Positions 11,678 through 46,275 of a stretch of 64,000 nucleotides of DNA are shown here, piece after piece. Both the position numbers and the translations under genes were made by a program. Numbering within the stretch: position 1 is the stretch's first letter; each line of letters begins with the position of its first letter. A model generated the notes under the pieces. It saw nothing but the letters and a program-made list of their open reading frames with translations. It was not told the DNA's origin and searched no databases. The DNA is taken from the sequence record LR535910.1; one strand, 5' to 3'.

Positions 11678-12520
11678 GTGTCTATTTACGATAAGCCCTC
11701 GAAAGAGATGTTGTTAGATGCTATTAACCGACAGAACGGATTAACGGCCAATCCACTCACATGGGAGCAGGTTGCAACTGGCTTCCCTGAGTCTGTCCAA
11801 ACGCCTGGCGCTGACCGGAATACACGTGTGCTCTTATACGGGTTGAACGGCAAGGGCTACAAAGGCAACGTTACGCTCGAATACGACCGTATCGAAATGG
11901 AAATTCTGTTCAGGAACGTAATACCGGTAGTCGTTGCCGACCCGGTAAATAAACTCTCTGAGTTGTTGCCGTTTCTGAATGCGAAATACGGCTTGTCTTT
12001 AGTTGCCGACGATATCGTTGACCAGTCAGTAAAAGATTTGGGAGAAAGCTGGTTAATCGATGTGACTATTAAGCCCGGTTGCTTGGCCTGGCAAGGTGGT
12101 TTCCGTTTACGCTTTGCGAAGTTCTTCCCGAACTTGGCGGATGTGGTTACGGATGTTGACCTCAGCGCAATTATCGCGCCGTTCGTGGTTGCTAGTAAAC
12201 CACAGGCTGAGTATGTGGCGTATGGTTACGATTGGACTGAACTGCAAAAACAGTTCACTACCGATTGGGCTTACAACCGCGCAATCACCGCGGCGGATGT
12301 TGAATTGCTTAACGAAGTGGTGCCATTAAAGTTTGCATATGTGACGGGGGCGACTGCGCAACCTGAACAAATTGCGCTTCAAGGTGCACGATATATGGGG
12401 ATAACTTCAGTCACACCGAACGATAGTTACAACCCCGATTATCAGCGTGTGGCGATTATCAAGCTAGCTGCGGACAGCAACTACGCCGGTAATCTCATCC
12501 TTCACTATCTCCCGATATAA
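11678..12520 (+). CDS. Virion structural paralogue, class I
   Basis: DAINRQN...RNTRV...GYKGNVTLEYDRI; ends GNLILHYLPI. Confidence 0.75.
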   Translation: MSIYDKPSKEMLLDAINRQNGLTANPLTWEQVATGFPESVQTPGADRNTRVLLYGLNGKGYKGNVTLEYDRIEMEILFRNVIPVVVADPVNKLSELLPFLNAKYGLSLVADDIVDQSVKDLGESWLIDVTIKPGCLAWQGGFRLRFAKFFPNLADVVTDVDLSAIIAPFVVASKPQAEYVAYGYDWTELQKQFTTDWAYNRAITAADVELLNEVVPLKFAYVTGATAQPEQIALQGARYMGITSVTPNDSYNPDYQRVAIIKLAADSNYAGNLILHYLPI

Positions 12521-12530
12521 GGATTTTGAC

Positions 12531-13376
12531 ATGCCACTTTTAGCCACTGCTGAAAAGATTATTATCGCGGAGGTTAACATCGAAAACAATCTCGATTTAA
12601 AAGTCGAAGATGTGGTTTTCGGCGTCCCTGCGATTCCGACGTCTGACGAAGACCTGGCAAAAGCCAATGGTCATAACGCGATGGTGCGCATTCAGGCATT
12701 GGCCACCGCTAATGCTATCGGTGCCACTACCGTGTATTACGATCGTGTTGACTTCGCAGACATGTTTACCGACCCAGACGGAATTCAACCTTTACGTGTT
12801 CCTGCACGACTCGATACCGTATACCGGATGCACGACGTGGTCGGGTTAATTAACCAGTATTACGGTCTCAGCCTTAAACCTGCAGATGTGGTGAATACCG
12901 AAATCGACAGGAAGACATGGCGTGTGGATCTGATTGCCACGCCCACTTCTTTAGGTTGGATAGGGCAACAACAGGTACAGCTGTTACCAGGCGATGCGTT
13001 GCTTCCTGCAAACTTCGAACCCTTAACAGTGACACCTTACGAGTATCCGTATTTCAACATCAAGGTCGGTCAAGGTGCAGTCTATTCGTATCCCTGGCGC
13101 TTTGATAATTTCGCGGAGGAATTTCAACGACTAGGTGCTGCGATAACCGCAGAACGTCTGGCACAGATTCTCAAAACGGTCACCGGTGATAACTGGACAA
13201 CGTACCGTAACCCAATCGACTTTAACCTTCGTGAAGCCGTCGTCGTCTATAACGGGCGTAACAAAGCGGAATTACCAACCAACCCAGCAGTCGACAACGT
13301 GCTGATTGTGGAGCTGTCGTTGTACTGTCTGAATTTTGGCGGGCGTTTGTATTTGCACTACAACGACCCTGATTAA
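12531..13376 (+). CDS. Virion structural paralogue, class I
   Basis: AEVNIEN...HNAMV...VYYDRV; ends GGRLYLHYNDPD. Confidence 0.75.
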   Translation: MPLLATAEKIIIAEVNIENNLDLKVEDVVFGVPAIPTSDEDLAKANGHNAMVRIQALATANAIGATTVYYDRVDFADMFTDPDGIQPLRVPARLDTVYRMHDVVGLINQYYGLSLKPADVVNTEIDRKTWRVDLIATPTSLGWIGQQQVQLLPGDALLPANFEPLTVTPYEYPYFNIKVGQGAVYSYPWRFDNFAEEFQRLGAAITAERLAQILKTVTGDNWTTYRNPIDFNLREAVVVYNGRNKAELPTNPAVDNVLIVELSLYCLNFGGRLYLHYNDPD

Positions 13377-34270: not shown

Positions 34271-34320
34271 AAATAAAAGGTACCTACCTCCCTTCGGGGA
34301 GGTAGGGCCTTTATTTTCTT
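34271..34320. terminator. Bidirectional terminator closing the minus-strand fibre/radical SAM operon
   Basis: AAATAAAAGG-TA-CCTACCTCCC-TTCG-GGGAGGTAGG-G-CCTTTATTTT. Confidence 0.85.
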
Positions 34321-34323
34321 TGC

Positions 34324-34995
34324 TTACATGCCGAGTGACTCGGACAATGTTTTTAATCCAGTGTAATCGCGCTTTTCAGCTAACTCACGGATTTGGCGTT
34401 TGTTATCTGCCATTGCTGAGTGCAACACTTGGTCACGTGCAACAATAGCGGCCAGCAACGCTTTACATTGGGCTACTGTAAACGGACTGTGCTTAGTATT
34501 CAGCGTATCGAGCCAGTATTCTGGTGCGGTATCTGCCTGAATGTATTGACCGAGGATGGTACGCGACGATTCATCGGCTTGAAAGTGACTACCTTCAAAC
34601 TCGATATAACCATGGCGCTCATCTTCGTAGCGGTGGTCGAGTTCCAACAGCATCTTCTGCACGTCTTCGTAAATGTAACGTGCGGTAGATTTCAGATTCC
34701 CGCGAATTTCGTCGAGGTCAATCTCCAGCACATTAGCAATAAACTCTTTCGTGCGTTTCAATGTGAAGTTAGCTTCAATCTCCGACATCTCATACAGCTT
34801 CATGCGTGCCAGGGCTTCTTTATCAGACATCCCTTCGATGAGATGGTAATGGAGTAATGCACAAAATCCGGTACGGCCCTGATCCTGCGCACCGATTCGT
34901 TCCATGAAATTACCGTGACGATCAATCGGCAAATCACGCTGGAAATAACGGGCGCGGATCTCTTCGTTCGTTAAGCTTTTGTCAGTAACAGACAT
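34324..34995 (-). CDS. DUF4376 domain protein (tail-fibre-assembly type)
   Basis: C-terminal GYIEFEGSHFQADESSR...YWLDTLN...FTVAQCKALLAAI pattern. Confidence 0.65.
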   Translation of the reverse strand: MSVTDKSLTNEEIRARYFQRDLPIDRHGNFMERIGAQDQGRTGFCALLHYHLIEGMSDKEALARMKLYEMSEIEANFTLKRTKEFIANVLEIDLDEIRGNLKSTARYIYEDVQKMLLELDHRYEDERHGYIEFEGSHFQADESSRTILGQYIQADTAPEYWLDTLNTKHSPFTVAQCKALLAAIVARDQVLHSAMADNKRQIRELAEKRDYTGLKTLSESLGM

Positions 34996-35537
34996 TCGTC
35001 CTCCTCAATCAGGCCAAGTTCTAACAACAAACCGAAGTCCAGCATCTGGAAGTCCTGATCGAGGTTACCGGCCCACAACAGAGAAATGTTGTGTTGCTCT
35101 TCTTCTTCCAACTGCGGGAGCAGGTGTTCTTCGAAGATTTGACGCTCTGTGTAATAAGCGTCAACCGGGTTATTGGAGCGTAAGTTACGAATACGCATCC
35201 GCGGGAATGACAAGCCCAACGCCACTAAACTTTCAGGACTGGCTTCATCAATAGAGTGACGTAGCAGTTCGATTTTGTGGCGTGGGTATGCAAGCAGTCG
35301 CTTCTCAAAGCCAGGGTTGCGCTTTTCGATTTCCGCGACAGACTCGTGTCCTTTCTCAACGCAGTAGACCGGGATCATCACATTCAGCCCGTATTTAATC
35401 AACAGGCTTTGGATTTCATCAGTGAAGTCTTCCCCTGCCACAATTGCGTGCACATTGTACAGCTTGCTTTTGCGCAGGAAGCGATCGACCAAGTGCAGTT
35501 TACGCTTCGTAAAATTGTGAATCAGTATTGACTTCAT
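34971..35537 (-). CDS. Unknown protein of the radical SAM cluster, 188 aa (start reassigned)
   Basis: GGAG RBS before the ATG at 35537; overlaps both neighbours. Confidence 0.7.
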   Translation of the reverse strand: MKSILIHNFTKRKLHLVDRFLRKSKLYNVHAIVAGEDFTDEIQSLLIKYGLNVMIPVYCVEKGHESVAEIEKRNPGFEKRLLAYPRHKIELLRHSIDEASPESLVALGLSFPRMRIRNLRSNNPVDAYYTERQIFEEHLLPQLEEEEQHNISLLWAGNLDQDFQMLDFGLLLELGLIEEDECLLLTKA

Positions 35538-36828
35538 TCTGGGCTCCGTTTTGTAATTTTTCTGCTTCAGCACGTTGGCGTACACAACGTGAACAATAGC
35601 ACATGGATTTATCATGCAAATCTGATGCGCGAGTCGTACCAGTTTTCTGATACCAATATTCCGCCGCCATCAGCTTCGCAGTAGTCCAACCACACTGACG
35701 ACGCTCGGCGTGATACGCTTTACGGTCTTCCAGTGTACCTTCACCGTTTTCGTACGATGCTGCTGCGCAGCTACCGCAGCTGTGTTTCATCGGACACCCT
35801 AAACAGGTTTCTGGGTAGTTGGTGTACTGCGTTTGAATCTCTTCTAACAGCTTACCACCGTCCAGGCTCACAAACTCACGACCGACCAGTTCTGCTACAG
35901 CAGAACGGGAAGTTACCGTGGACATGAAACGGTTACAACCGTAAATCTTGCGATCAAAGCCGAGACAGGTCATGTGCGTCAACGTACCGCAGTACGGTTT
36001 CAGGCGTTCTGGGTCGAGACGAACAGAGTCGTCATGTAAGAGTTTGTCACGCCAATCCGGGTCCCAAGTTGCCATAAAGTTCAGGCCATCCGGGATGATG
36101 TGCGTAATCGTGTTACGCGGGTTGGTGTGCAGACCCTTCTCAATCCAGTAGTCCATCACGTCCATCATCTGGTTCGCGATATCCAACGCCATATGGCGCG
36201 GCAGGATATCTTCGTACGTTACGTTACCAGAAATGGTACCACCGCCGGACATGTCAATTAACGATTTCATGCTGGCGGCATAGTGCGGCAATGTATCGAT
36301 CGTAAACGTCGCCTTTACGCCCAGCTCAGCGATGCCAACACTCTTCAGGTAATTGTAACCGCGTACCGCAGCTTCGTACGACCCTTCACGCGTCGTGGTA
36401 AAGATACGATATTTGTCATGGACTTCAGGTAAACCATCGATGGAGACCCCAATAGACAGTTTGTCTTTCCAGCGCTCGATAATTTCTTTGTTCAGCGGAC
36501 GGTCCAGAAGCGTACCGTTCGTGGAGATACTGAACATATACGGGCGATTGTGTTCTGCGCATAACTTCTCTGCGGTTTCAAAGGCCGCCAAAAGAAGTTT
36601 AGGCTGCATGAACGGCTCACCACCGATGATATCGATGATGACTTCAACGTTCGGGATATCTTTATCACGCTCGAAACAAGCGTGGATAAAATCAATCACG
36701 TCTGCTACTTTGTTGTTACGCGGATATTTACGCTCGTAGCAGTATTCGCAGTCCAGGTTACATGACAGGTTAGTCACAACCTGATACGTGCGTGGTGTGT
36801 ACTGGATTTGCTGTTCGCTATTACTCAT
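35500..36828 (-). CDS. Radical SAM enzyme with SPASM-type C-terminal domain (putative peptide maturase)
   Basis: CNLDCEYC (CX3CX2C), GGEP, SISTNGTLL, VSIDG; auxiliary Cys motifs YCGTLTHMTCLGFDRKIYGC and CLGCPMKHSCGSC...QC; extra C-terminal CYCSRC. Confidence 0.9.
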   Translation of the reverse strand: MSNSEQQIQYTPRTYQVVTNLSCNLDCEYCYERKYPRNNKVADVIDFIHACFERDKDIPNVEVIIDIIGGEPFMQPKLLLAAFETAEKLCAEHNRPYMFSISTNGTLLDRPLNKEIIERWKDKLSIGVSIDGLPEVHDKYRIFTTTREGSYEAAVRGYNYLKSVGIAELGVKATFTIDTLPHYAASMKSLIDMSGGGTISGNVTYEDILPRHMALDIANQMMDVMDYWIEKGLHTNPRNTITHIIPDGLNFMATWDPDWRDKLLHDDSVRLDPERLKPYCGTLTHMTCLGFDRKIYGCNRFMSTVTSRSAVAELVGREFVSLDGGKLLEEIQTQYTNYPETCLGCPMKHSCGSCAAASYENGEGTLEDRKAYHAERRQCGWTTAKLMAAEYWYQKTGTTRASDLHDKSMCYCSRCVRQRAEAEKLQNGAQNEVNTDSQFYEA

Positions 36829-37735
36829 TGTTCGCCGCCCGTTTACGCTTAGCAGAAATTACACGGTTGATGTAGTTATACGCATCAACGCCGATAGAAC
36901 GCGCCAGGCGATTACAGCCGACTTCCAATATCTCTGGGGCGTTCTGAATTTGCTCCTGCGTACCGTCGGCGTTAAGCCACAGCACTTCACTGCACGTGTT
37001 GCACTCGGTATCGAACATTTTACTGATTGCAAGCCCACATTCAGAATCGTTCTGCATGTTAAGGCGTTCGATATTGTCGAGTATTTTCCAATACCCGTAC
37101 ATGAAGTTCATGACGTGGTCTGGCGATAACGGTTTCGGCATCATCGCATCAAACAACAACGACACACCACCTGGACGGTAATGATAGATTGCTCGGTGCA
37201 GCTCGATGAAATCTTCGTACCAGCGTTTATCACCTAACTGGTCACGCGTCATCACACCCCAGGTGTAATAGTTGTCCAGCTCGTACAGCACTTCCAGCGC
37301 TTCGTGATTACCACCGTTTACAAAGTTCATAAACGGACGTTCCGACTTCTTGTAGCCGTCAATGGACACAAAGATAAGGTCGAACTGTTTCAGCAACGGC
37401 AGATGTGATTTACGCATCTTTAAACCGTTGGTGTACATGTGATGACGGAGGTTCGGATGAGACTCCTTCAACTCGTTCACGAAGTCTTCAATCTTGCGCT
37501 GCGCTAACAGCGGCTCACCGCCCGTCCAATGAATCTCACCGATATCCGGATTCTTCTCTAAAATCGAGAGAATCTCTTCACGTTGAAACTCACGAGAAGT
37601 ATCTTCTCTATCCATGTAATAAGCCCCTCCACAGAAGCTACAGTCTAAGTTACACTTAGAAGTTGCGACAACCGACAGAATTGACGGTTTGTCGTACAGT
37701 TCAGACGAGATCCTGGATTCTACTTGATCTGTCAT
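36821..37735 (-). CDS. Second radical SAM protein (short auxiliary domain; start reassigned)
   Basis: CNLDCSFC, WTGGEPLL, MYTNG, VSIDG; C-terminal C...CNTC...C; GGAG RBS before the ATG at 37735. Confidence 0.85.
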   Translation of the reverse strand: MTDQVESRISSELYDKPSILSVVATSKCNLDCSFCGGAYYMDREDTSREFQREEILSILEKNPDIGEIHWTGGEPLLAQRKIEDFVNELKESHPNLRHHMYTNGLKMRKSHLPLLKQFDLIFVSIDGYKKSERPFMNFVNGGNHEALEVLYELDNYYTWGVMTRDQLGDKRWYEDFIELHRAIYHYRPGGVSLLFDAMMPKPLSPDHVMNFMYGYWKILDNIERLNMQNDSECGLAISKMFDTECNTCSEVLWLNADGTQEQIQNAPEILEVGCNRLARSIGVDAYNYINRVISAKRKRAANNE

Positions 37736-37757
37736 TGCAGGTTGCTCCAGTATATTT

Positions 37758-38645
37758 TTAAATATAATCAATGGCGAATAAAGGATCTTCGTCTACGTTA
37801 GCGCCAGGCACCAGTAGCATCGGGTCGTGATAGGCAGCTAAAATTTTGTTCAGGTCGGCGTGTCTTTCGTTCAGACGTTTCAAATCGGCCAACGTTACCG
37901 AACGACCACGAATCTCAGAAACAGCTTCTGCTTCTTCTTTCGTTAAATCCACCTTCGTTAAGAGGAAACTTACCAGCTTACTCAAATCCGCTTCCGTCGC
38001 CGGATAATCCCCATATCGGGTTTGAACCAGATGTTGCATCCACGGTTTACGAATACGTTTGGTGATTTCGAAATCGTCAGTCAGTGCATACCAGACAGAA
38101 CGCTTTTTATCCCACACGAACTTATAGCTATACGCCATCATGTCCGCTAAACGGGTGATGCCGAGTTCTTTATACCCCTCGATATCGATGTATGGTTCGG
38201 TGTCGAAATACGTTTCCGTATCGGCAGGTACCAGTACAAAGTAGTAAGGGAACGAGCCCAGATAGTCCGGACTCCACCAACGGCGCGCCATCGGTTTTGC
38301 TTCCAGTTCGTCAAACGGTGTAAACATCAGTTCTAAATCGACGCTGTTGTTCAAAATCCCTTCACTGAAGAAATACTTACCGTCGACTAACACGCCACGA
38401 GAGTTACCATCGCCGTTAAAGATAACGATGGCCTCTGCAACCATATCACGGATCTTAAACGTATTTTCTACGGTGTAGTTCTTCTTGTCGGTCAAGAAGC
38501 GACCACGAACCTTTGGCCACTCACCAGGAATCTGTGCAATCAGTCTGACTTTGTCAGCGAGGTGTGCACGCACTGAATCTGGGGAAGATAGATGCAGCGG
38601 GTGGTTGAATGTGGTTTTATACGCAAGATGCAAATCGTTTTTCAT
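37758..38645 (-). CDS. Unknown protein between the Cys-rich peptides and the radical SAM genes, 295 aa
   Basis: GGAG RBS; co-oriented; no motif recognised. Confidence 0.75.
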   Translation of the reverse strand: MKNDLHLAYKTTFNHPLHLSSPDSVRAHLADKVRLIAQIPGEWPKVRGRFLTDKKNYTVENTFKIRDMVAEAIVIFNGDGNSRGVLVDGKYFFSEGILNNSVDLELMFTPFDELEAKPMARRWWSPDYLGSFPYYFVLVPADTETYFDTEPYIDIEGYKELGITRLADMMAYSYKFVWDKKRSVWYALTDDFEITKRIRKPWMQHLVQTRYGDYPATEADLSKLVSFLLTKVDLTKEEAEAVSEIRGRSVTLADLKRLNERHADLNKILAAYHDPMLLVPGANVDEDPLFAIDYI

Positions 38646-38667
38646 TTAATACTCCGAACGTTTTCTG

Positions 38668-38874
38668 TTATCGATTCCCCGCTCCACGGCTACAGCTTCC
38701 GCTGCAGGACCAGCTACACCCACCATTACAGTTATAGTGAGAAAGCGGTAAGCCAGCCAGGTTATTTGTGGTCGACACGGTGCCCTGGTTAGCGATATAG
38801 TTGTTTGCCTGTGCGGTTGTAATGTAACCTTCTACCGTAACGAGACGGTTTCGAATAGTCTTGAGACTGATCAC
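38668..38874 (-). CDS. Cys-X3 repeat peptide 3 (short core, 4 Cys)
   Basis: Leader MISLKTIRNRLVTVEG, core NCNGGCSWSCSGSCSRG; GGAGG RBS. Confidence 0.8.
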   Translation of the reverse strand: MISLKTIRNRLVTVEGYITTAQANNYIANQGTVSTTNNLAGLPLSHYNCNGGCSWSCSGSCSRGAGNR

Positions 38875-38885
38875 ATAAGCCTCCG

Positions 38886-39287
38886 TCAGTTAGGACCTGA
38901 ACAACCACCAGAACACGCGCCGGAGCAGTTTGCGGAGCAGGATTTGCCACAGCCGCCAGAGCAGTTACCAGTACACGTTCCGCTACAACCACCAGAACAT
39001 GAAGAGCTGCAACCCGTACAGCTGCTGCTACAGCCCGATACACAGTTTGCGGAACAAGTCGACCCACAACCACCCGTAGCAGACCCAGTACACCCGCCAG
39101 AACAACTCGAGCAACTAAAAGAGCATGTGCCACCACAGTCATAGTGCGAACGGCCTTGACCTGCGAACAAGTCGGCGTTATTCGTAGCTTTATTGCGAAT
39201 GTAGTTTTGCACATTCGTGGTGTTCTTTAAAGCGTTTGCATCGATCGTGTTTAATCGGTTATTCAGTTCTTTTAATCCAATTGCCAT
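38886..39287 (-). CDS. Cys-X3 repeat peptide 2 (20 Cys), putative radical SAM substrate
   Basis: Leader MAIGLKELNNRLNTIDA; core DCGGTCSFSC...CSGACSGGCSGPN; GGGGG RBS. Confidence 0.85.
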   Translation of the reverse strand: MAIGLKELNNRLNTIDANALKNTTNVQNYIRNKATNNADLFAGQGRSHYDCGGTCSFSCSSCSGGCTGSATGGCGSTCSANCVSGCSSSCTGCSSSCSGGCSGTCTGNCSGGCGKSCSANCSGACSGGCSGPN

Positions 39288-39297
39288 TTAATCCCCC

Positions 39298-39690
39298 TTA
39301 GCGACCTGAACAGCCGCCGGAGCAGGCCCCGGAGCAGTTTGCGGAACAAGAGCCGCCGCAACCACCTGAACAGTTACCGGTACAGCTACTACTGCAACCA
39401 CCAGAACAACCAGAGCAACCAGAACAGTTACCGCCACACGTCGAAGAACAGCTACCGATACAAGAAGCAGAACAGCTTCCTGAACAGCTCGAACAGCCAT
39501 GCGAGCAACCGTTAGAGCACGTCCAAGAACATGTCCCGCCGCAATCTAGCTGTGCTTTCGTCCAACCCCCAAATCGGTCTGCTGCATTATGGGCTTTAGA
39601 GGCCACTTGCGCCTCGATGCGGGGGCCTGTCGCCATGTTAGCTTCGACTATCTGGACGCGGTTTCTGACGTCTTTAATAGATATCGCCAT
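39298..39690 (-). CDS. Cys-X3 repeat peptide 1 (21 Cys), putative radical SAM substrate
   Basis: Leader MAISIKDVRNRVQIVEA; core DCGGTCSWTC...CSGACSGGCSGR; AAGGA RBS. Confidence 0.85.
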   Translation of the reverse strand: MAISIKDVRNRVQIVEANMATGPRIEAQVASKAHNAADRFGGWTKAQLDCGGTCSWTCSNGCSHGCSSCSGSCSASCIGSCSSTCGGNCSGCSGCSGGCSSSCTGNCSGGCGGSCSANCSGACSGGCSGR

Positions 39691-39755
39691 TACGCTTCCT
39701 TAAAAAGTAGAACGAGCGGACTATGTCCATAAACATAGTCCGGCTCGTAAACAAG

Positions 39756-40958
39756 TTACTTAGTACCCGCTTCAGCTTGAACATCGTCGCGCGAGGTGAG
39801 GTTGTTGTTGACGTGAACAGCAGCCTGCACAACACCTCCATACTGTTTATGGAGGTAATTCGGGTGTGGGTTATCCGCAGCCGCATGGTTCGCCAGATTC
39901 TGGTTTGCCTGCGAAATTGCGTTGGTGTTGTTTATAACCTGAGTTTTAAGACTGTTGATTTGTCCTTGCAGGTTATCAATTTGCTGTTGGAAGTCTTTGC
40001 CCTGATTCTCAAGATCCGTGACGCGCTGATTTGTTTCATTCAGTGCAGACTGAAGATCGTTAACCATCTTCTGTAATTGCAACACCAGAGAATTAAGGTT
40101 AGCTAATGCTAACGACATTTTCTGGTAATTTTGAGCAACCACGTTAAGCTGGTCGTTCCACGCGGCTAACGAAGCCACAATTGCATCGATGCGTTGCCCC
40201 AACGCCGTGTCTGCTGCTCTTAAGTCGCCGATATCGTTGATAGTGGCGTCAATGGCAGTCTGTACACTTTGAATCAGGGCACGAATCTCCGTCTCCGTCA
40301 GGCCATTAACCTGATGAATGTCGAGATTGTGTACGTTACCTTCGGCGTTGATGTGGGTATTTAAGGCGTCGAGGAAGTCGTTTCTCAGACCGTCCAGAAT
40401 ACCTTTAATTTCTTCCAGCTGTACTGCAGAGCCGGAGTTAATCGCATCTTTAATCCCCGCGAGTACGGTAATGATATACTCAAAACCGTAGATATCGCCA
40501 AGGTCTTTATACGTCGGGGCGGACGGGAACGTATCGGGTACGTTTCGAAGATCCTTGAAGTCCACCACACGGTCTTCAATTTTCAGCGACGCGATCGCTT
40601 GTCGGATACCTTCGACGTTCGCGGACTGAAAACCACCAACGACTTGCGCAGAGACTTCGATATCAGTAGGAATGGCCGAGTTAGTTACCACCACACCCAT
40701 GACCACTTCGCGGTTCTTGGTCATTTTCTGATATGCAGTATGTGCAAAAATCAGTTCGTAGTCTGTGCCGCGTTTATACGGGTAGACACCTGGTTTATTC
40801 GCAGCTGCCAAGCGGAAGGTATCCGCGTAGAAAGCTCCGTCAGGAAAAGCAAAAGCCCGGTTAACTTTACCAGAACCTAACGTAATACGCCGTGTAACGG
40901 CGTTCGACGTTAATGTCCCGGTAAGGTCGAGCGGGTACTGATGAATGATTTCGGCCAT
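39756..40958 (-). CDS. Short tail fibre or whisker-like protein with long coiled coil (start reassigned)
   Basis: YPLDLTG..SN attachment-type N-terminus shared with the giant fibres; HINAEGNVH and HAAADNPH repeats; heptad coiled coil in the C-terminal third; AGGAG RBS before 40958. Confidence 0.7.
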   Translation of the reverse strand: MAEIIHQYPLDLTGTLTSNAVTRRITLGSGKVNRAFAFPDGAFYADTFRLAAANKPGVYPYKRGTDYELIFAHTAYQKMTKNREVVMGVVVTNSAIPTDIEVSAQVVGGFQSANVEGIRQAIASLKIEDRVVDFKDLRNVPDTFPSAPTYKDLGDIYGFEYIITVLAGIKDAINSGSAVQLEEIKGILDGLRNDFLDALNTHINAEGNVHNLDIHQVNGLTETEIRALIQSVQTAIDATINDIGDLRAADTALGQRIDAIVASLAAWNDQLNVVAQNYQKMSLALANLNSLVLQLQKMVNDLQSALNETNQRVTDLENQGKDFQQQIDNLQGQINSLKTQVINNTNAISQANQNLANHAAADNPHPNYLHKQYGGVVQAAVHVNNNLTSRDDVQAEAGTK

Positions 40959-41005
40959 TGCCAAACTCCTTTGATTGGGGCTTCCTTGCCCCATAGCGCT
41001 ATCTG

Positions 41006-44000
41006 TTAGGTACGGAACATAAGATTGACCTGGATAATATCAGGCTGTTGACGTCCTCTCTCGTTCACCCAATCGTGCGCAATCGTTAACGTAAGATCAT
41101 CGCCATCCCACGCCACGATCGGTGGTGGGAATAAACCCTGAGCGCCCGTGGTAACAACCGGGATTGCACCTGTCACATTCGTAAACGTGTAGCTACGACT
41201 GTTCAGAACAACTGGTGTGCCGTTGGTCTCTCCCGGCTGTGGTAAGATTTGAATCTTACTATCCGAAAGATCGGTGGTGATTGGTAGTCCCCCAGCGTCA
41301 GTGAAAAGCCAAGAGCAAATATGCTGGTTAGCTGTTTCGAGCGCTGAAGAACTTACCGCCGCGACAAATGTAAAGGTGCACGGCACGCCTGCTGGCAGAG
41401 AGTGCTGTTTGTGGTGCACGGTATGTGGTGACGGCAATAACACTTCTGGATTTTCGTCAATGTTAACATCCGTACCTTCCGCCTCGACGTTGTAGAAAAA
41501 GCCATCCACCGCCTCCCATGGGGCAACGTGGACATTAAAGGTCGTTTCTACTCCCGGTGTACCTGGGACGACGAATTTACTTTGCACCACCACCATCAAG
41601 TTCGTTGAGGTCGGTGAGAAAGCGGGCGTTGGAATACCTACCCACTCCATTCCCAACGATGCCGCTTCACCGTTCTCATCAGCCGTTACCGTCGCGATTG
41701 TTGTAGGATGTTTCCAAAACGCCCCCGATTTGTTTGCCTGAGTAAACGCCGGCAAAGTTTTCAAGCCTTCGAAACGTTTGGACACCATCGCTTTACCGCG
41801 ACGCTGTGCGTCAGATACGGTATAAAGCAACTGACTATCCAGATAGCCTTTCGTAGCATCGATCGACAAAGGACCCATCGCTTCTTTACGCAATGGTGCC
41901 AGTCTGCCCGTTGCTGCATCCCTTCCCACTTCCACATCATGCTTATTCTCAACCGCCGCATGTTCCAACAGTTGTTTCACCGCCCCCAATCGCTTAGCAT
42001 GTTCGACGTTAGTCTCGACGACTCGCGACGAGCCCGTTTTAACATACCCGATATAGAGTTCCGTTTCAGTGTCTGGATGTTGAATCACGTCCATTACGTA
42101 CTTCGGTGTACCATTTTCTACCTTGGCGTGCAGGTAGAATGTCCGGTTCTGATGGTTTGTTGGAAATGCTGCGCTGAGGTCAATATACCACGTAGGCAGC
42201 TTATAAGTGCTCGAGCCGAAACGCAGGTCAACTTCCTCAGTCACATATACCAGCCAACCTTCGGCTGTTTCCACACCAGCAATGACGACCGATTCAGTCG
42301 GGCCACTAAAATTAGGAGCCGCGACAAAATCACTCGACGACATTGCGATACCACCACAATAGACGTAGTCGAGAGATGAGTTGTGTAGCATCACCTGATC
42401 ACGATGAGCCAGATAAGCTGGGCTGACTGGAGTGTGGGATGGTGCCATGCGTCCAATGCCGTGTGGAGCAGAAGAACGCGTCCAGGTACCGTTAGACAGC
42501 GTAAGACCAACACCGTAGTTAAGCGCACCCAAGTCGCCAATTTGGCGCAAGGTTAACGTGTGTGGAAGATACAACCCGAACTGAGTACCATCTACTGACA
42601 CCAGTGTAGGTTGTCCCGGCCGGCGTGTTTTTCCTCCCGTTATCTCGCCCAACGTAGCATAGTTCAAGCCGTAGTCGAGGTTGTTATAGAAGTCAAACAG
42701 TGCCAATATCGCTGCGGGGAATGTTACCTGCCCGTTGCTGATCGTTGGTTTCAGTGTAAAGTAGTAGATATCCAACACGTTAACATTGTTCACAGTACGC
42801 ATACATGCTACTTGTGCTAACGTGAGCGGTGTGGCCGTACCAATGCCGATGAACCAAATGGAGAACAGTGCCTTTCCGGCGTTATTTGCGGCAAGGATAA
42901 ATTCCGAAGCATAACCATTCGCAGCGCCAGCCGGTGCACCGTCGATGATCATCTGCTTCATCTTATCCCATTCGGCTTGTGACAGCGTCAACCGATCGGC
43001 ATGAATCGTGAAAGTGCCAGAAACGTTGTGGTAAGGGAATGTTTCTGGTCCTGTGCAATACCAGCCGTTTAACTCTGTACCAGGCGACGCCGGTGTAACA
43101 ATGTGGCACATCTGCGACAGATTCTCGTACGTGGTAGAATCTACTACACGACGATTGTTAGTTGGTCCATACCCCGCTTTACCTGAATAAGTGGTGTTCG
43201 GATCAAACTCAACTTCAATTGCCAAACGGGTACGCGGCTGTGACAACCAGATAAGTCTGGAATTCGCTCCCAGAGTCAGCGGATACGCCATGCCCAGCTC
43301 GTAGATAGAACCACGACCTTGGTTTAACATTACCGCACTAAAACTTCTGGCAGTGAAGTTGTAGTCGCACGACAGGTACTCGTACCAACTCACACCGTCA
43401 TCTAACGTTGTAATCGTGACATAAGGCATTAGGTCGCGATCGCCTGCATGTCCTTGCGAAACGATATACTTGTCTTGCGATGTTGCAAAGGTTCGGTTAT
43501 TAGCTTGACCTTCGCCCCATTTCCGGCTCGGAATCCCAATCTCAGCGCCACCGTTATAACGAACCGTGGTAAGATCGGCCACAATAGGGAATCGATCAGC
43601 ACCTTCCAGCGTTATCGTCATTGAACTACAATCAACAACAAAGCTTGACACCCATTGTTTAAAGTTAATAGTTTGCCCTGTAGTAGAAGCAAACCAAACC
43701 GTTGGAGTTAAACCAACACGAAAGTTCAGCCCATCCACACCAATCGCGTGATTACATTCCGGACCATGGACGAAATTTCGCGCACTATTCCACTTCGCCG
43801 ATGCGTCTGCGTAGATTTGTGTTACTGGCGCTACCAACACATCTGTATCAGAACGTTTCTGACCCTGACGCAAGTAGATATTATCTCCCGACGTTAACAT
43901 CCCACCTGTTAACACATCCGCCACAAACGTGTTGCTACCACCCAGATTAAGTTCGTCGAGTGCGATGCTACGCATACTCACGAAATAGTCACCGGAGGTA

Positions 44001-46189
44001 AGCACAGTACGGAGCAGATAAACCCGCTCGTTGCAAACGATCAAATCGTTTGTTGATGGATCAACAACCCATGGAGCGGTTGTAATCACACCGGCCGCGT
44101 TACCATTTCGGTAATCGCCCAACTGAACTTTAACAACACGATGATGTTTTGCATGGTCAATGGTGCCGTCAAAGATGACCAGGTAGTACGCACCGTCACT
44201 GCCTAAGCAGATCATTGCATCTGTACCGGTAATCACAATAGCAACCAGATTCACCCCAGGATACGCCGACATTCCAGCGGGTCGATAACGTACGGACGTC
44301 TGCTGCATATTTTCCAGCGTATTGCTTGGCGACACATCAGCATAGGCGTAATAGATAGCCCAGTCACCTGGTGGATTCCCGTTAGAACCGTTACGGAGCG
44401 AGTAAACCTTACCAGACTCGTAACGCGCCAAACCTTTCTGCCAGGTTTGGTTTTTGGTATACCCTTCGTAGTTCCCCTGGACTGGTATAGGCAAGAAGTT
44501 ATTGTTGCCGTACGATGATCCGCCGACAGTCCACGCCGGTAATAACGTACCAATCTTGTCATTCAGTGTGTCAATCTTTTGTTCAAGCAAGAAGCCCTGA
44601 CGCGAAGTGACCATCTTATCCGAGGTAGTGTCGATTGCATCCCACAGTTTAGCCAAACCTGTAACAGACGTGGATGCGTACGGCACGTTATCGAGATCTG
44701 CAATGGTGTGGGTGTGCGTTGTAAGCGCTTTGCCTGATAGCACGGTACGCAATGCGTTAGTAACTGGCTTTTCTAACGGTCCGGTATTGTCCATTTTCTC
44801 AATACCGAAATCTGCCGCGGTTAAGGTCAGATGCATCTGCCCGTTTGCGTCTAACACAAACCCTTTACCATTGACCGTATACGTGTCGTCCACATATCCG
44901 TCGAGTTTGTTCTTCAAGTCAGTAACAGCTTTTTGGGAAATCGCTGTGGACGCTGCAGCGGATGCCGAGAGGTTAGTAATCGCAAACAAACCCTGCACAG
45001 TTGTGGTTGCTGCAGGCAGCTCCGCATTCATGTAAACTTTGTTTGTTTCTTTACCAGAGCCGTAAATCTTCAACGTGTCGCTGGACTTGAAGTAGGCGTT
45101 TGCTGGAAGTATCTTCACCGAGGTCAAGTACATCTTAACCATATCCGGTGTAACGAGATACACGCTGTTATACACAGGTGCAAGCACACCTGCATCATAA
45201 GCGCCCCACTTGTCACCTGCTTTACCCGAGTGAACCCAAAGCGTGTTCAGACCAGCACTGAACTCCGTAGCGATACCCGGTTCGTTGTTATCCTGGTCAG
45301 CTTTTAATACCAGCGGTTTTGTCGAGGTGATAATGAACTTCTCACCTTTCATGCTGATAACGTGACCGGACGTTGTTTGGAATGTAATTGCGTCGTTATT
45401 CAGAACACGCATACGGCCCAGTAAATCACCCAGGGTATTATCCAGAAGCATGTCAACATGTTTCTGTTGGATACCGCTGGTAGACATTAGCGTCACTAAC
45501 TCTGCCAGTGTACGTCCAAACGCTTTAGTCGCATCCACGGCCTTACCGAGCACAGGGAGTGCGCCAATGTCACCGCAGGTGTAACCATGTGCATTTTTAA
45601 TCAGGTGGTGTTGATACATTTCGTCATCAAACACCTGTTTACCGTTCTGATAAATCAAATCGGTAACTTCGGCAAATGCCTCATCTAGTTCGTGGGCGCG
45701 CTCTAAAATACCCAGACGGATATCTTCCAACGCCTTTACGATTTCATCGCGAAGAATCGCTTCTTCGAGATCTTTTGGCGGGTCGATTGGCGAAATAATC
45801 GGCGGATATTTCATCAGCTCAGACCAATCGCAGTTGCGCGGGTCTTTCATATCCGTCTTAACCAGATACTTGCCGATTTCAGAAGCAGGGATGCGATACT
45901 GTCGACCAACCGACAACAACTCGTATTCTACCTCTGTGGCGTTCAGCAGCATTATGCTGCCGTATATTGCATCGTTCTCAGCCTCGGCTAATTCCTGGAA
46001 GTAATGTCCTAAGAAATAATCAAGACCTTCTATTAACTTACGTTTGGTTCCGGTTGTTTTATCGGTAACTGTTAACGTTAACCCGATGCGATAGAACGGT
46101 GCTTCGACGGGAATGACCGTCGAATAACGGTTCGGGTAAGTAGCGGTACTGAGGGTACCGTTAAACTGCGCCGCATCTTCTCTCGGCAT
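41006..46189 (-). CDS. Giant tail fibre protein, about 1727 aa (start reassigned)
   Basis: AGGAG RBS before 46189; APFY...G.DY N-terminus; ATTTVQGL and ASTSVTGLAKL fibre repeats; NPH-like motifs; beta-rich distal domains. Confidence 0.75.
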   Translation of the reverse strand: MPREDAAQFNGTLSTATYPNRYSTVIPVEAPFYRIGLTLTVTDKTTGTKRKLIEGLDYFLGHYFQELAEAENDAIYGSIMLLNATEVEYELLSVGRQYRIPASEIGKYLVKTDMKDPRNCDWSELMKYPPIISPIDPPKDLEEAILRDEIVKALEDIRLGILERAHELDEAFAEVTDLIYQNGKQVFDDEMYQHHLIKNAHGYTCGDIGALPVLGKAVDATKAFGRTLAELVTLMSTSGIQQKHVDMLLDNTLGDLLGRMRVLNNDAITFQTTSGHVISMKGEKFIITSTKPLVLKADQDNNEPGIATEFSAGLNTLWVHSGKAGDKWGAYDAGVLAPVYNSVYLVTPDMVKMYLTSVKILPANAYFKSSDTLKIYGSGKETNKVYMNAELPAATTTVQGLFAITNLSASAAASTAISQKAVTDLKNKLDGYVDDTYTVNGKGFVLDANGQMHLTLTAADFGIEKMDNTGPLEKPVTNALRTVLSGKALTTHTHTIADLDNVPYASTSVTGLAKLWDAIDTTSDKMVTSRQGFLLEQKIDTLNDKIGTLLPAWTVGGSSYGNNNFLPIPVQGNYEGYTKNQTWQKGLARYESGKVYSLRNGSNGNPPGDWAIYYAYADVSPSNTLENMQQTSVRYRPAGMSAYPGVNLVAIVITGTDAMICLGSDGAYYLVIFDGTIDHAKHHRVVKVQLGDYRNGNAAGVITTAPWVVDPSTNDLIVCNERVYLLRTVLTSGDYFVSMRSIALDELNLGGSNTFVADVLTGGMLTSGDNIYLRQGQKRSDTDVLVAPVTQIYADASAKWNSARNFVHGPECNHAIGVDGLNFRVGLTPTVWFASTTGQTINFKQWVSSFVVDCSSMTITLEGADRFPIVADLTTVRYNGGAEIGIPSRKWGEGQANNRTFATSQDKYIVSQGHAGDRDLMPYVTITTLDDGVSWYEYLSCDYNFTARSFSAVMLNQGRGSIYELGMAYPLTLGANSRLIWLSQPRTRLAIEVEFDPNTTYSGKAGYGPTNNRRVVDSTTYENLSQMCHIVTPASPGTELNGWYCTGPETFPYHNVSGTFTIHADRLTLSQAEWDKMKQMIIDGAPAGAANGYASEFILAANNAGKALFSIWFIGIGTATPLTLAQVACMRTVNNVNVLDIYYFTLKPTISNGQVTFPAAILALFDFYNNLDYGLNYATLGEITGGKTRRPGQPTLVSVDGTQFGLYLPHTLTLRQIGDLGALNYGVGLTLSNGTWTRSSAPHGIGRMAPSHTPVSPAYLAHRDQVMLHNSSLDYVYCGGIAMSSSDFVAAPNFSGPTESVVIAGVETAEGWLVYVTEEVDLRFGSSTYKLPTWYIDLSAAFPTNHQNRTFYLHAKVENGTPKYVMDVIQHPDTETELYIGYVKTGSSRVVETNVEHAKRLGAVKQLLEHAAVENKHDVEVGRDAATGRLAPLRKEAMGPLSIDATKGYLDSQLLYTVSDAQRRGKAMVSKRFEGLKTLPAFTQANKSGAFWKHPTTIATVTADENGEAASLGMEWVGIPTPAFSPTSTNLMVVVQSKFVVPGTPGVETTFNVHVAPWEAVDGFFYNVEAEGTDVNIDENPEVLLPSPHTVHHKQHSLPAGVPCTFTFVAAVSSSALETANQHICSWLFTDAGGLPITTDLSDSKIQILPQPGETNGTPVVLNSRSYTFTNVTGAIPVVTTGAQGLFPPPIVAWDGDDLTLTIAHDWVNERGRQQPDIIQVNLMFRT

Positions 46190-46221
46190 TGCAAACACTC
46201 CTAATCTGTAATAAAACGGAG

Positions 46222-46275
46222 ACCGCCCTCCCAATAACGGAAGGGCGGTTTACCTACGGACTACCCGCCCGTAGG
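46222..46275 (-). terminator. Tandem hairpins between two fibre genes (terminator or processing site)
   Basis: ACCGCCCT...AGGGCGGT and CCTACGG...CCGTAGG stems; TTTTATT follows on the minus strand. Confidence 0.5.

Follow-up and report, generated by a model that had tools for sequence, protein, structure and literature searches.

Cysteine-ladder proteins in the tail-fibre operon of an SPN3US-like phage: putative short fibre modules matured by radical-SAM enzymes

Why should a phage tail-fibre operon carry two radical-SAM genes, and what are the three small, cysteine-studded proteins encoded just ahead of them? The question arises from a stretch of 64,000 nucleotides of the sequence record LR535910.1, hereafter the window. 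Judged by its sequence, its source is an SPN3US-like jumbo myovirus of the genus Seoulvirus, with positions 35400-41000 being fully identical (100%) to Salmonella phage SPFM4 and to phages related to it, and 98% identical to SPN3US. Several further SPFM records (LR535901, LR535905, LR535911, LR535912 and others) matched the locus only as at least 40 short pieces, with about 44% cover at 99% identity and protein alignments spanning only 6-32%, and look like assemblies with many small indels. An earlier reading, made from the letters of the window without database searches (the sequence-only reading), took the three proteins for precursor peptides composed of a helical leader and a Cys-rich core. 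We favor, with a rough probability of 0.55, the explanation that they are short fibre modules with a covalently matured Cys ladder rather than cleaved and exported peptides.

The three genes lie in tandem on the minus strand. The first, pepA (39298..39690), has an ATG start and encodes a protein of 130 aa with 21 Cys, in which an RVQIVE motif (39643-39660) is followed by the junction CGGTCSWTC (39517-39543) and a ladder covering 39301-39543. In pepB (38886..39287; ATG start; 133 aa; 20 Cys) the corresponding RLNTID motif lies at 39240-39257 and the junction at 39111-39137, and in the short paralogue pepC (38668..38874; GTG start; 68 aa; 4 Cys) an RLVTVE motif lies at 38830-38847 and the junction at 38704-38730. 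A Shine-Dalgarno-like purine run precedes each gene, and all three products belong to phrog_6085, a phage protein family of unknown function (E = 7e-40 for pepA, 2e-41 for pepB and 3e-25 for pepC). The ORF translations bear out the counts of 21, 20 and 4 Cys in the sequence-only reading, as well as its account of their spacing, which is nearly always 4 with a few steps of 3 and, in pepB, a single spacing of 8 with an Ala in the slot where a Cys is expected. The alignment likewise recovers the common N-terminus and core start that it had described, C-x3-C-S-W/F-x-C following Q-L-D, H-Y-D or H-Y-N. Cys makes up 15-16% of pepA and pepB in a regular array. Among the 400 window ORFs of at least 40 aa, only pepA, pepB and pepC contain at least four consecutive C-x2-3 steps, and their ladders are far beyond chance. 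A scan with a local copy of Pfam returned no match for the trio or for the 295-aa accessory protein encoded next to it; the repeat model TIGR04114/PF27846, which has its cut-off at 20 bits, scores the three at 18.4, 16.4 and 13.7 bits, and PF27846 is among the precomputed assignments of their relatives P0117-P0130.

Reference annotations mostly miss or mis-frame the trio (38668-39690 of the window; 12268-13297 of the locus L001). The end of gp166 of SPN3US falls 4 nt from the pepB stop, that is, in another frame, and pepA and pepC are unannotated in that genome, while in the Huxley, Phobos, CR5 and pEa_SNUABM_29 annotations opposite-strand ORFs were called over the ladders. We rejected these alternative-frame and opposite-strand ORFs, since the Cys frame alone is conserved with low dN/dS and ribosome-binding sites; three conserved genes are added to the reference annotations. 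Virion proteomics of SPN3US lists gp167-170 and does not list gp163-166, which is a weak test for the trio: as the correct reading frames were not in the searched database, their absence from it says little.

The gene order places the trio within a late structural, tail-fibre operon. On its upstream side are the large baseplate/fibre genes gp168-170, with the 1742-aa gp168 at 41006..46234, and, directly upstream of pepA, gp167 (39756..40994), both on the minus strand. The 412-aa gp167 is an abundant non-head protein detected in SPN3US virions, with a long coiled coil and a single RVTDLE trimer motif at residue 324, and is a candidate docking partner for the putative mini-fibres. Downstream of pepC, again on the minus strand, follow the accessory protein (SPN3US gp165; phrog_8030; 37758..38645), the small radical-SAM enzyme gp164 (36821..37771, with a start that may instead be at 37735), the 442-aa radical-SAM/SPASM enzyme gp163 (35500..36828), the conserved 214-aa neighbour gp162 (phrog_7988; 34971..35615) and the 223-aa DUF4376 protein gp161 (34324..34995), which is the last gene. 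The operon is closed by a terminator-like hairpin (34283..34306) between convergent genes, which has a perfect 10-bp stem with T runs on both strands and could serve both ways. DUF4376 genes also flank the radical-SAM pair in two unrelated contigs (L018, 5247-5885; L019, 9248-9919), and the DUF4376 protein may be a further member of the cassette.

The same order, namely fibre, 400-aa virion protein, long A, long B, short C, accessory, small radical-SAM, SPASM radical-SAM and two small ORFs, is syntenic in five genera: Seoulvirus, Machinavirus, Erskinevirus, Derbicusvirus and Wellingtonvirus. Across them the number of Cys is constant at 21 in A and ranges from 20 to 23 in B; the residues between the ladder Cys vary among Ser, Gly, Thr, Ala and Asn about a C-S-G-x unit, and in 14 proteins the ladder consists of 236 CX3C and 38 CX2C steps. 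The short paralogue C retains the N-terminus and the junction, with only two Cys in two of the genera. Comparison across related phages, a check that had been proposed for the trio, gave dN/dS values of 0.01-0.2 against the orthologues wherever dS was not saturated, indicative of strong purifying selection. The earlier observation that the pepA and pepB tails are nearly identical in protein and yet divergent at synonymous positions also proves correct: 26 residues of the last 28 codons are identical in the face of 19 nucleotide differences (pS 0.67, pN 0.07). Recent gene conversion can be discarded as the source of the identical tails, because 14 of the 26 identical residues differ in their codons. 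Across the genera the C-terminal tails of A and B have a mean identity of 0.69 within a phage versus 0.43 between genera, again with many synonymous differences, and we read this covariation as matched selection on the pair rather than recent gene conversion.

The strongest guide to what these proteins might be comes from their relatives. Homologues of the SPASM enzyme, with 26-47% identity, are found in the tail modules of unrelated sipho-, podo- and myovirus contigs. In all ten loci anchored on such a homologue that we examined, a Cys-ladder protein is encoded just upstream, within two or three genes, of the radical-SAM genes, and a radical-SAM gene is likewise present in both of the loci that were reached from a Cys-ladder protein. 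Given this 10/10 association, the peptides are very likely the substrates of the neighbouring radical-SAM enzymes; no other candidate substrate was conserved across the radical-SAM loci examined. In a Deferribacter abyssi prophage (L010) and in L016, a GpJ-type tail gene is followed by a protein of 302 or 258 aa, typical of fibres in its N-terminal part and ending with the same junction and 29 or 13 ladder Cys, and thereafter by a homologue of the accessory protein and two or three radical-SAM genes. In a 213-kb T4-like contig (L011/L012) the ladder forms the end of a 568-aa protein with Pfam PF27846. A T7-like contig (L014) encodes in succession a protein with the T7 tail-fibre N-domain, a collagen-like tip, a 206-aa Cys-ladder tip, an accessory homologue and a fused double radical-SAM protein. 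A distant contig with S74-type fibres (L013) has the full trio of two long proteins and one short one.

A profile search with the peptides against 1.84 billion representative proteins gave 391 matches, and 31 of the 150 matches listed, with lengths of 60-494 aa, contain the junction [ND]-[AS]-x-x-L-x-G-x5-Y-x-C-x2-3-C-S-W-T-C. In nineteen of 20 long relatives the C-terminus matches phrog_6085 and the N-terminal part matches tail-fibre PHROGs (P0204, for instance, has fibre families at residues 1-135 and phrog_6085 at 308-398), and the ladder module thus recurs in proteins that contain recognised tail-fibre domains. Between pepB and the Deferribacter prophage fibre, BLASTP showed no relation because of the composition correction; HMM and motif comparison did recover it. 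Accordingly, pepA, pepB and pepC are, on their sequence relationships, free-standing copies of a module that forms the far end of the fibre in other phages. Also among the best profile matches are P0180-P0185, which are 1580-1800 aa long and contain the ladder in 8-11 distinct stretches. Among the distant matches are bacterial Cys-ladder peptides with twin-arginine-like signals (P0126-P0130), a separate exported branch that has no C-S-W junction.

The enzymes themselves are recognisable radical-SAM proteins. The 442-aa enzyme matches PF04055 at 55.6 bits (cut-off 29.5) and, in 20 homologues, the CX3CX2C residues C23, C27 and C30 are invariant, as are C280, C298, C342, C345, C351, C354 and C379 of the SPASM set, in which C288 is nearly invariant. 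Among protein families it best matches the CXXX-repeat maturase TIGR04115, at 125.6 bits, and PapB, at 114 bits; as the former lies below the curated cut-off of 350 bits, the enzyme is better described as a relative of TIGR04115 than as an equivalog. Its nearest solved structure is CteB (PDB 5wgg), and it has no N-terminal recognition domain (RRE), the radical-SAM motif beginning at residue 23. The small radical-SAM protein, of 304-316 aa, is a distant paralogue of the SPASM enzyme in the same PHROG; it has a CX3CX2C motif, and its three conserved C-terminal Cys would suffice for one additional cluster. For the accessory protein, a model with a pLDDT of 87.8 resembles no fold in PDB or BFVD other than that of its own orthologue, and this comparison revealed no recognition-domain, winged-helix or chaperone fold. 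It matches no NCBIfam model and is not the third member of the TIGR04115 system; its homologues stand beside Cys-ladder fibre genes in four other loci (L010, L013, L014 and L016). Neither the annotated neighbours nor family scans of the cluster included a leader peptidase or an exporter.

What, then, is the segment ahead of the ladder? The sequence-only reading had it as an amphipathic leader that might act both as maturase recognition site and as trimerising helix. An AlphaFold2 monomer of pepA has a helix at residues 5-19 with pLDDT above 80, while the ladder, with confidence below 50, acquires no confident fold. The R-h-x-x-h-E motif is known to specify parallel three-stranded coiled coils by way of a salt bridge between neighbouring chains (PMC3653964). 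Within the helix, R-V-Q-I-V-E of pepA and R-L-V-T-V-E of pepC match this motif, R-L-N-T-I-D of pepB has an Asp for the Glu, and the background rate of the motif in the window is 0.34 per 1000 aa. In Derbicusvirus the A protein retains the Arg of the motif and not the Glu, and B and C retain the Glu and not the Arg, a division that would weakly suit a mixed trimer. The first Cys falls at residue 47-52 in every paralogue of all genera and, therefore, the junctions would be in register. As the phrog_6085 model aligns to the fused fibres only from its position 17-35 onward, merely the first 16-19 residues are unique to the free-standing peptides, and what follows in the supposed leader is fibre sequence. 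Thus, the trimerising helix survives as a prediction, whereas most of the proposed recognition segment is homologous to the part of a fibre that precedes the ladder. This homology, together with the lack of a recognisable protease or exporter at the locus and of an N-terminal recognition domain in the SPASM enzyme, makes the proposal of a precursor peptide with a removable leader less likely. The further suggestion of a heterotrimer of two long chains and one short chain is at best tentative; the complete trio kept in the distant contig with S74-type fibres fits it and does not prove it.

From these strands we assemble the following scheme. The trio is read as a set of short fibre modules because everything from the remainder of the leader through the junction to the ladder recurs in tail fibres beside homologues of the same enzyme, and that the three proteins are structural fibre modules seems to us somewhat probable. 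Their synthesis would be late, at the same time as that of the baseplate and fibre proteins. Each consists of a predicted trimer-type helix of about 16-19 residues, some 30 residues in common with true tail fibres, the almost invariant junction G-x5-Y-x-C-x3-C-S-W-T-C and the C-S-G-x ladder. The N-terminal helices would bring the chains together in register, as suggested by the first Cys lying at a near-constant residue. The SPASM enzyme, the small radical-SAM enzyme and the accessory protein might then staple the Cys ladder covalently into a rod; the staples, by analogy with the nearest characterised enzymes, would most likely be thioether links from Cys sulfur to carbon. The N-terminal part would stay attached, and the thin rod would be mounted on the periphery of the tail; in other phages, the same module is fused to the far end of a fibre. 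If so, the presence of two radical-SAM genes within a fibre operon would be accounted for. As the module lies beside radical-SAM enzymes in every locus examined, part of the host-contact fibre is probably subject to chemical modification in phages. It is more doubtful whether the scheme extends to its widest form, in which phages of several morphotypes build a stapled-ladder fibre end by radical-SAM chemistry that the SPN3US-like phages have split off into a registered two-long-one-short heteromer held by an N-terminal trimer helix.

CteB, which acts on SCIFF, and PapB, which makes freyrasin, are SPASM enzymes that furnish, respectively, the nearest structure and the second-best family match, and they link a Cys sulfur to a carbon of another residue. 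In contrast to the phage enzyme, CteB has an N-terminal recognition domain, the match starting at CteB residue 106 and query residue 22. The known acceptors of ranthipeptide maturases are Asp, Glu, Thr and Asn. These residues are rare or irregular in the C-S-G-x ladder, and the near lack of Asp, Glu or other proven acceptors there speaks against the analogy; the chemistry may therefore differ from that of the known ranthipeptide enzymes, and we regard thioethers as having about an even chance of being the cross-link. The nearest experimental analogue is the CrpA/CrpB/CrpC system of Methanococcus voltae, in which a SPASM radical-SAM enzyme installs thioethers on a protein-sized, Cys-rich and non-exported substrate (PMC13692751). 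There, too, two substrates have a common N-terminal region, and CrpB was proposed to be a chaperone for CrpA maturation since modification went further upon co-expression (PMC13692751). However, the Crp enzyme belongs to the family TIGR04463, and its system has a 17-residue repeat with C-x-x-Q/D, is cellular and has no virion link.

In family terms, the closest counterpart is the computationally defined CXXX-repeat system (target TIGR04114, maturase TIGR04115 and TIGR04117; PF27846), which likewise combines a Cys at every fourth residue with an adjacent radical-SAM/SPASM enzyme devoid of an N-terminal recognition domain. The adjacent CXXX-repeat target by which the TIGR04115 system is defined is found here three times over, directly upstream of the enzymes. 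Yet the phage proteins score below the curated cut-offs (126 vs 350 for the enzyme; 18 vs 20 for the target), the third gene of the system is absent from the phage locus, and the phage lineage has its own junction motif, a location in tail-fibre modules and a second radical-SAM enzyme. Hence we treat the phage system as a related lineage rather than a member. No experimental paper on the CXXX-repeat family was found in the literature searched.

Among the competing explanations, a classical phage-encoded RiPP would have the N-terminal 48-50 residues guide the enzymes and then be cut off, with the Cys-rich cores released at lysis as antimicrobial or signalling peptides. A leader-plus-core layout beside radical-SAM/SPASM enzymes, the resemblance of the family to CXXX-repeat targets and the existence of bacterial relatives with export signals, such as the twin-arginine-like N-termini of P0126-P0130, are all in keeping with it. 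We nevertheless consider it unlikely, for the supposed leader is homologous to fibre sequence from about residue 17, the ladder is fused to fibres elsewhere, the operon has no annotated peptidase or transporter, and the genes stand between fibre genes and the DUF4376 gene in a late structural operon. About as improbable is an explanation in which the trio, or at least pepC, remains outside the finished virion as assembly helpers, assisting the enzymes or the gp167 fibre in the role of scaffold, decoy or chaperone. It would sit well with a short paralogue that retains the N-terminus and the junction with only 2-4 Cys, with the Crp precedent of a second protein with a common N-terminus as proposed chaperone, and with the trio not being listed among the SPN3US virion proteins. 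Against it, the long ladders keep their number of Cys (20-23) and are under strong purifying selection, suggestive of a product that itself has a function, and the fused versions are fibre ends rather than helpers.

Further down the scale, as a very unlikely case, is a metal- or iron-sulfur-binding ladder of free thiolates that undergoes no covalent change, with the radical-SAM enzymes acting on some other substrate. The high Cys content of the long proteins (15-16%) and its regular array would agree with such a role, and the Crp study mentions that a different Cys-rich substrate of a radical-SAM enzyme may be linked to metal (PMC13692751). However, Cys-ladder proteins accompany this SPASM enzyme lineage in every locus examined, and those loci offer no other conserved substrate on which the enzymes might act instead. 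The reading of the trio as matured fibre modules, in turn, has structural parallels in trimeric fibres that are stabilised by regular arrays and have elongated repeat modules at their ends, such as collagen-like tips and the Milano fibre. To our knowledge, no enzyme-made cross-links have been described in collagen-like or Milano-type fibres; unlike these, the Cys-ladder module is accompanied by dedicated radical-SAM enzymes. The tail fibre of phage Milano is reported to contain a disulfide network (PMC10811340). In the T7-like contig (6632-7621), the collagen-like tip of 118 aa and the Cys-ladder tip of 206 aa appear as alternative fibre tips with one N-terminal domain in common.

Within the limits of the literature searched, no paper came to light that connects radical-SAM maturation with phage fibres, and a review of jumbo-phage biology from 2026 makes no mention of radical SAM or of cysteine. 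Were the reading as matured fibre modules to hold, it would unite radical-SAM peptide maturation with phage host-contact structures, two fields not joined before, and would be the first case of a structural element in a phage fibre that is cross-linked by enzymes. It would also offer the orphan CXXX-repeat radical-SAM family both a biological role and a cultured model, the latter because the SPN3US-like phages are the only isolated phages in the collection searched with full-length homologues. Finally, in one of the unrelated contigs with a DUF4376 gene (L019, 2269-4537), two S-adenosylmethionine lyase genes lie a few kb upstream of the two radical-SAM genes, an odd pairing of activities that may be separated in time.
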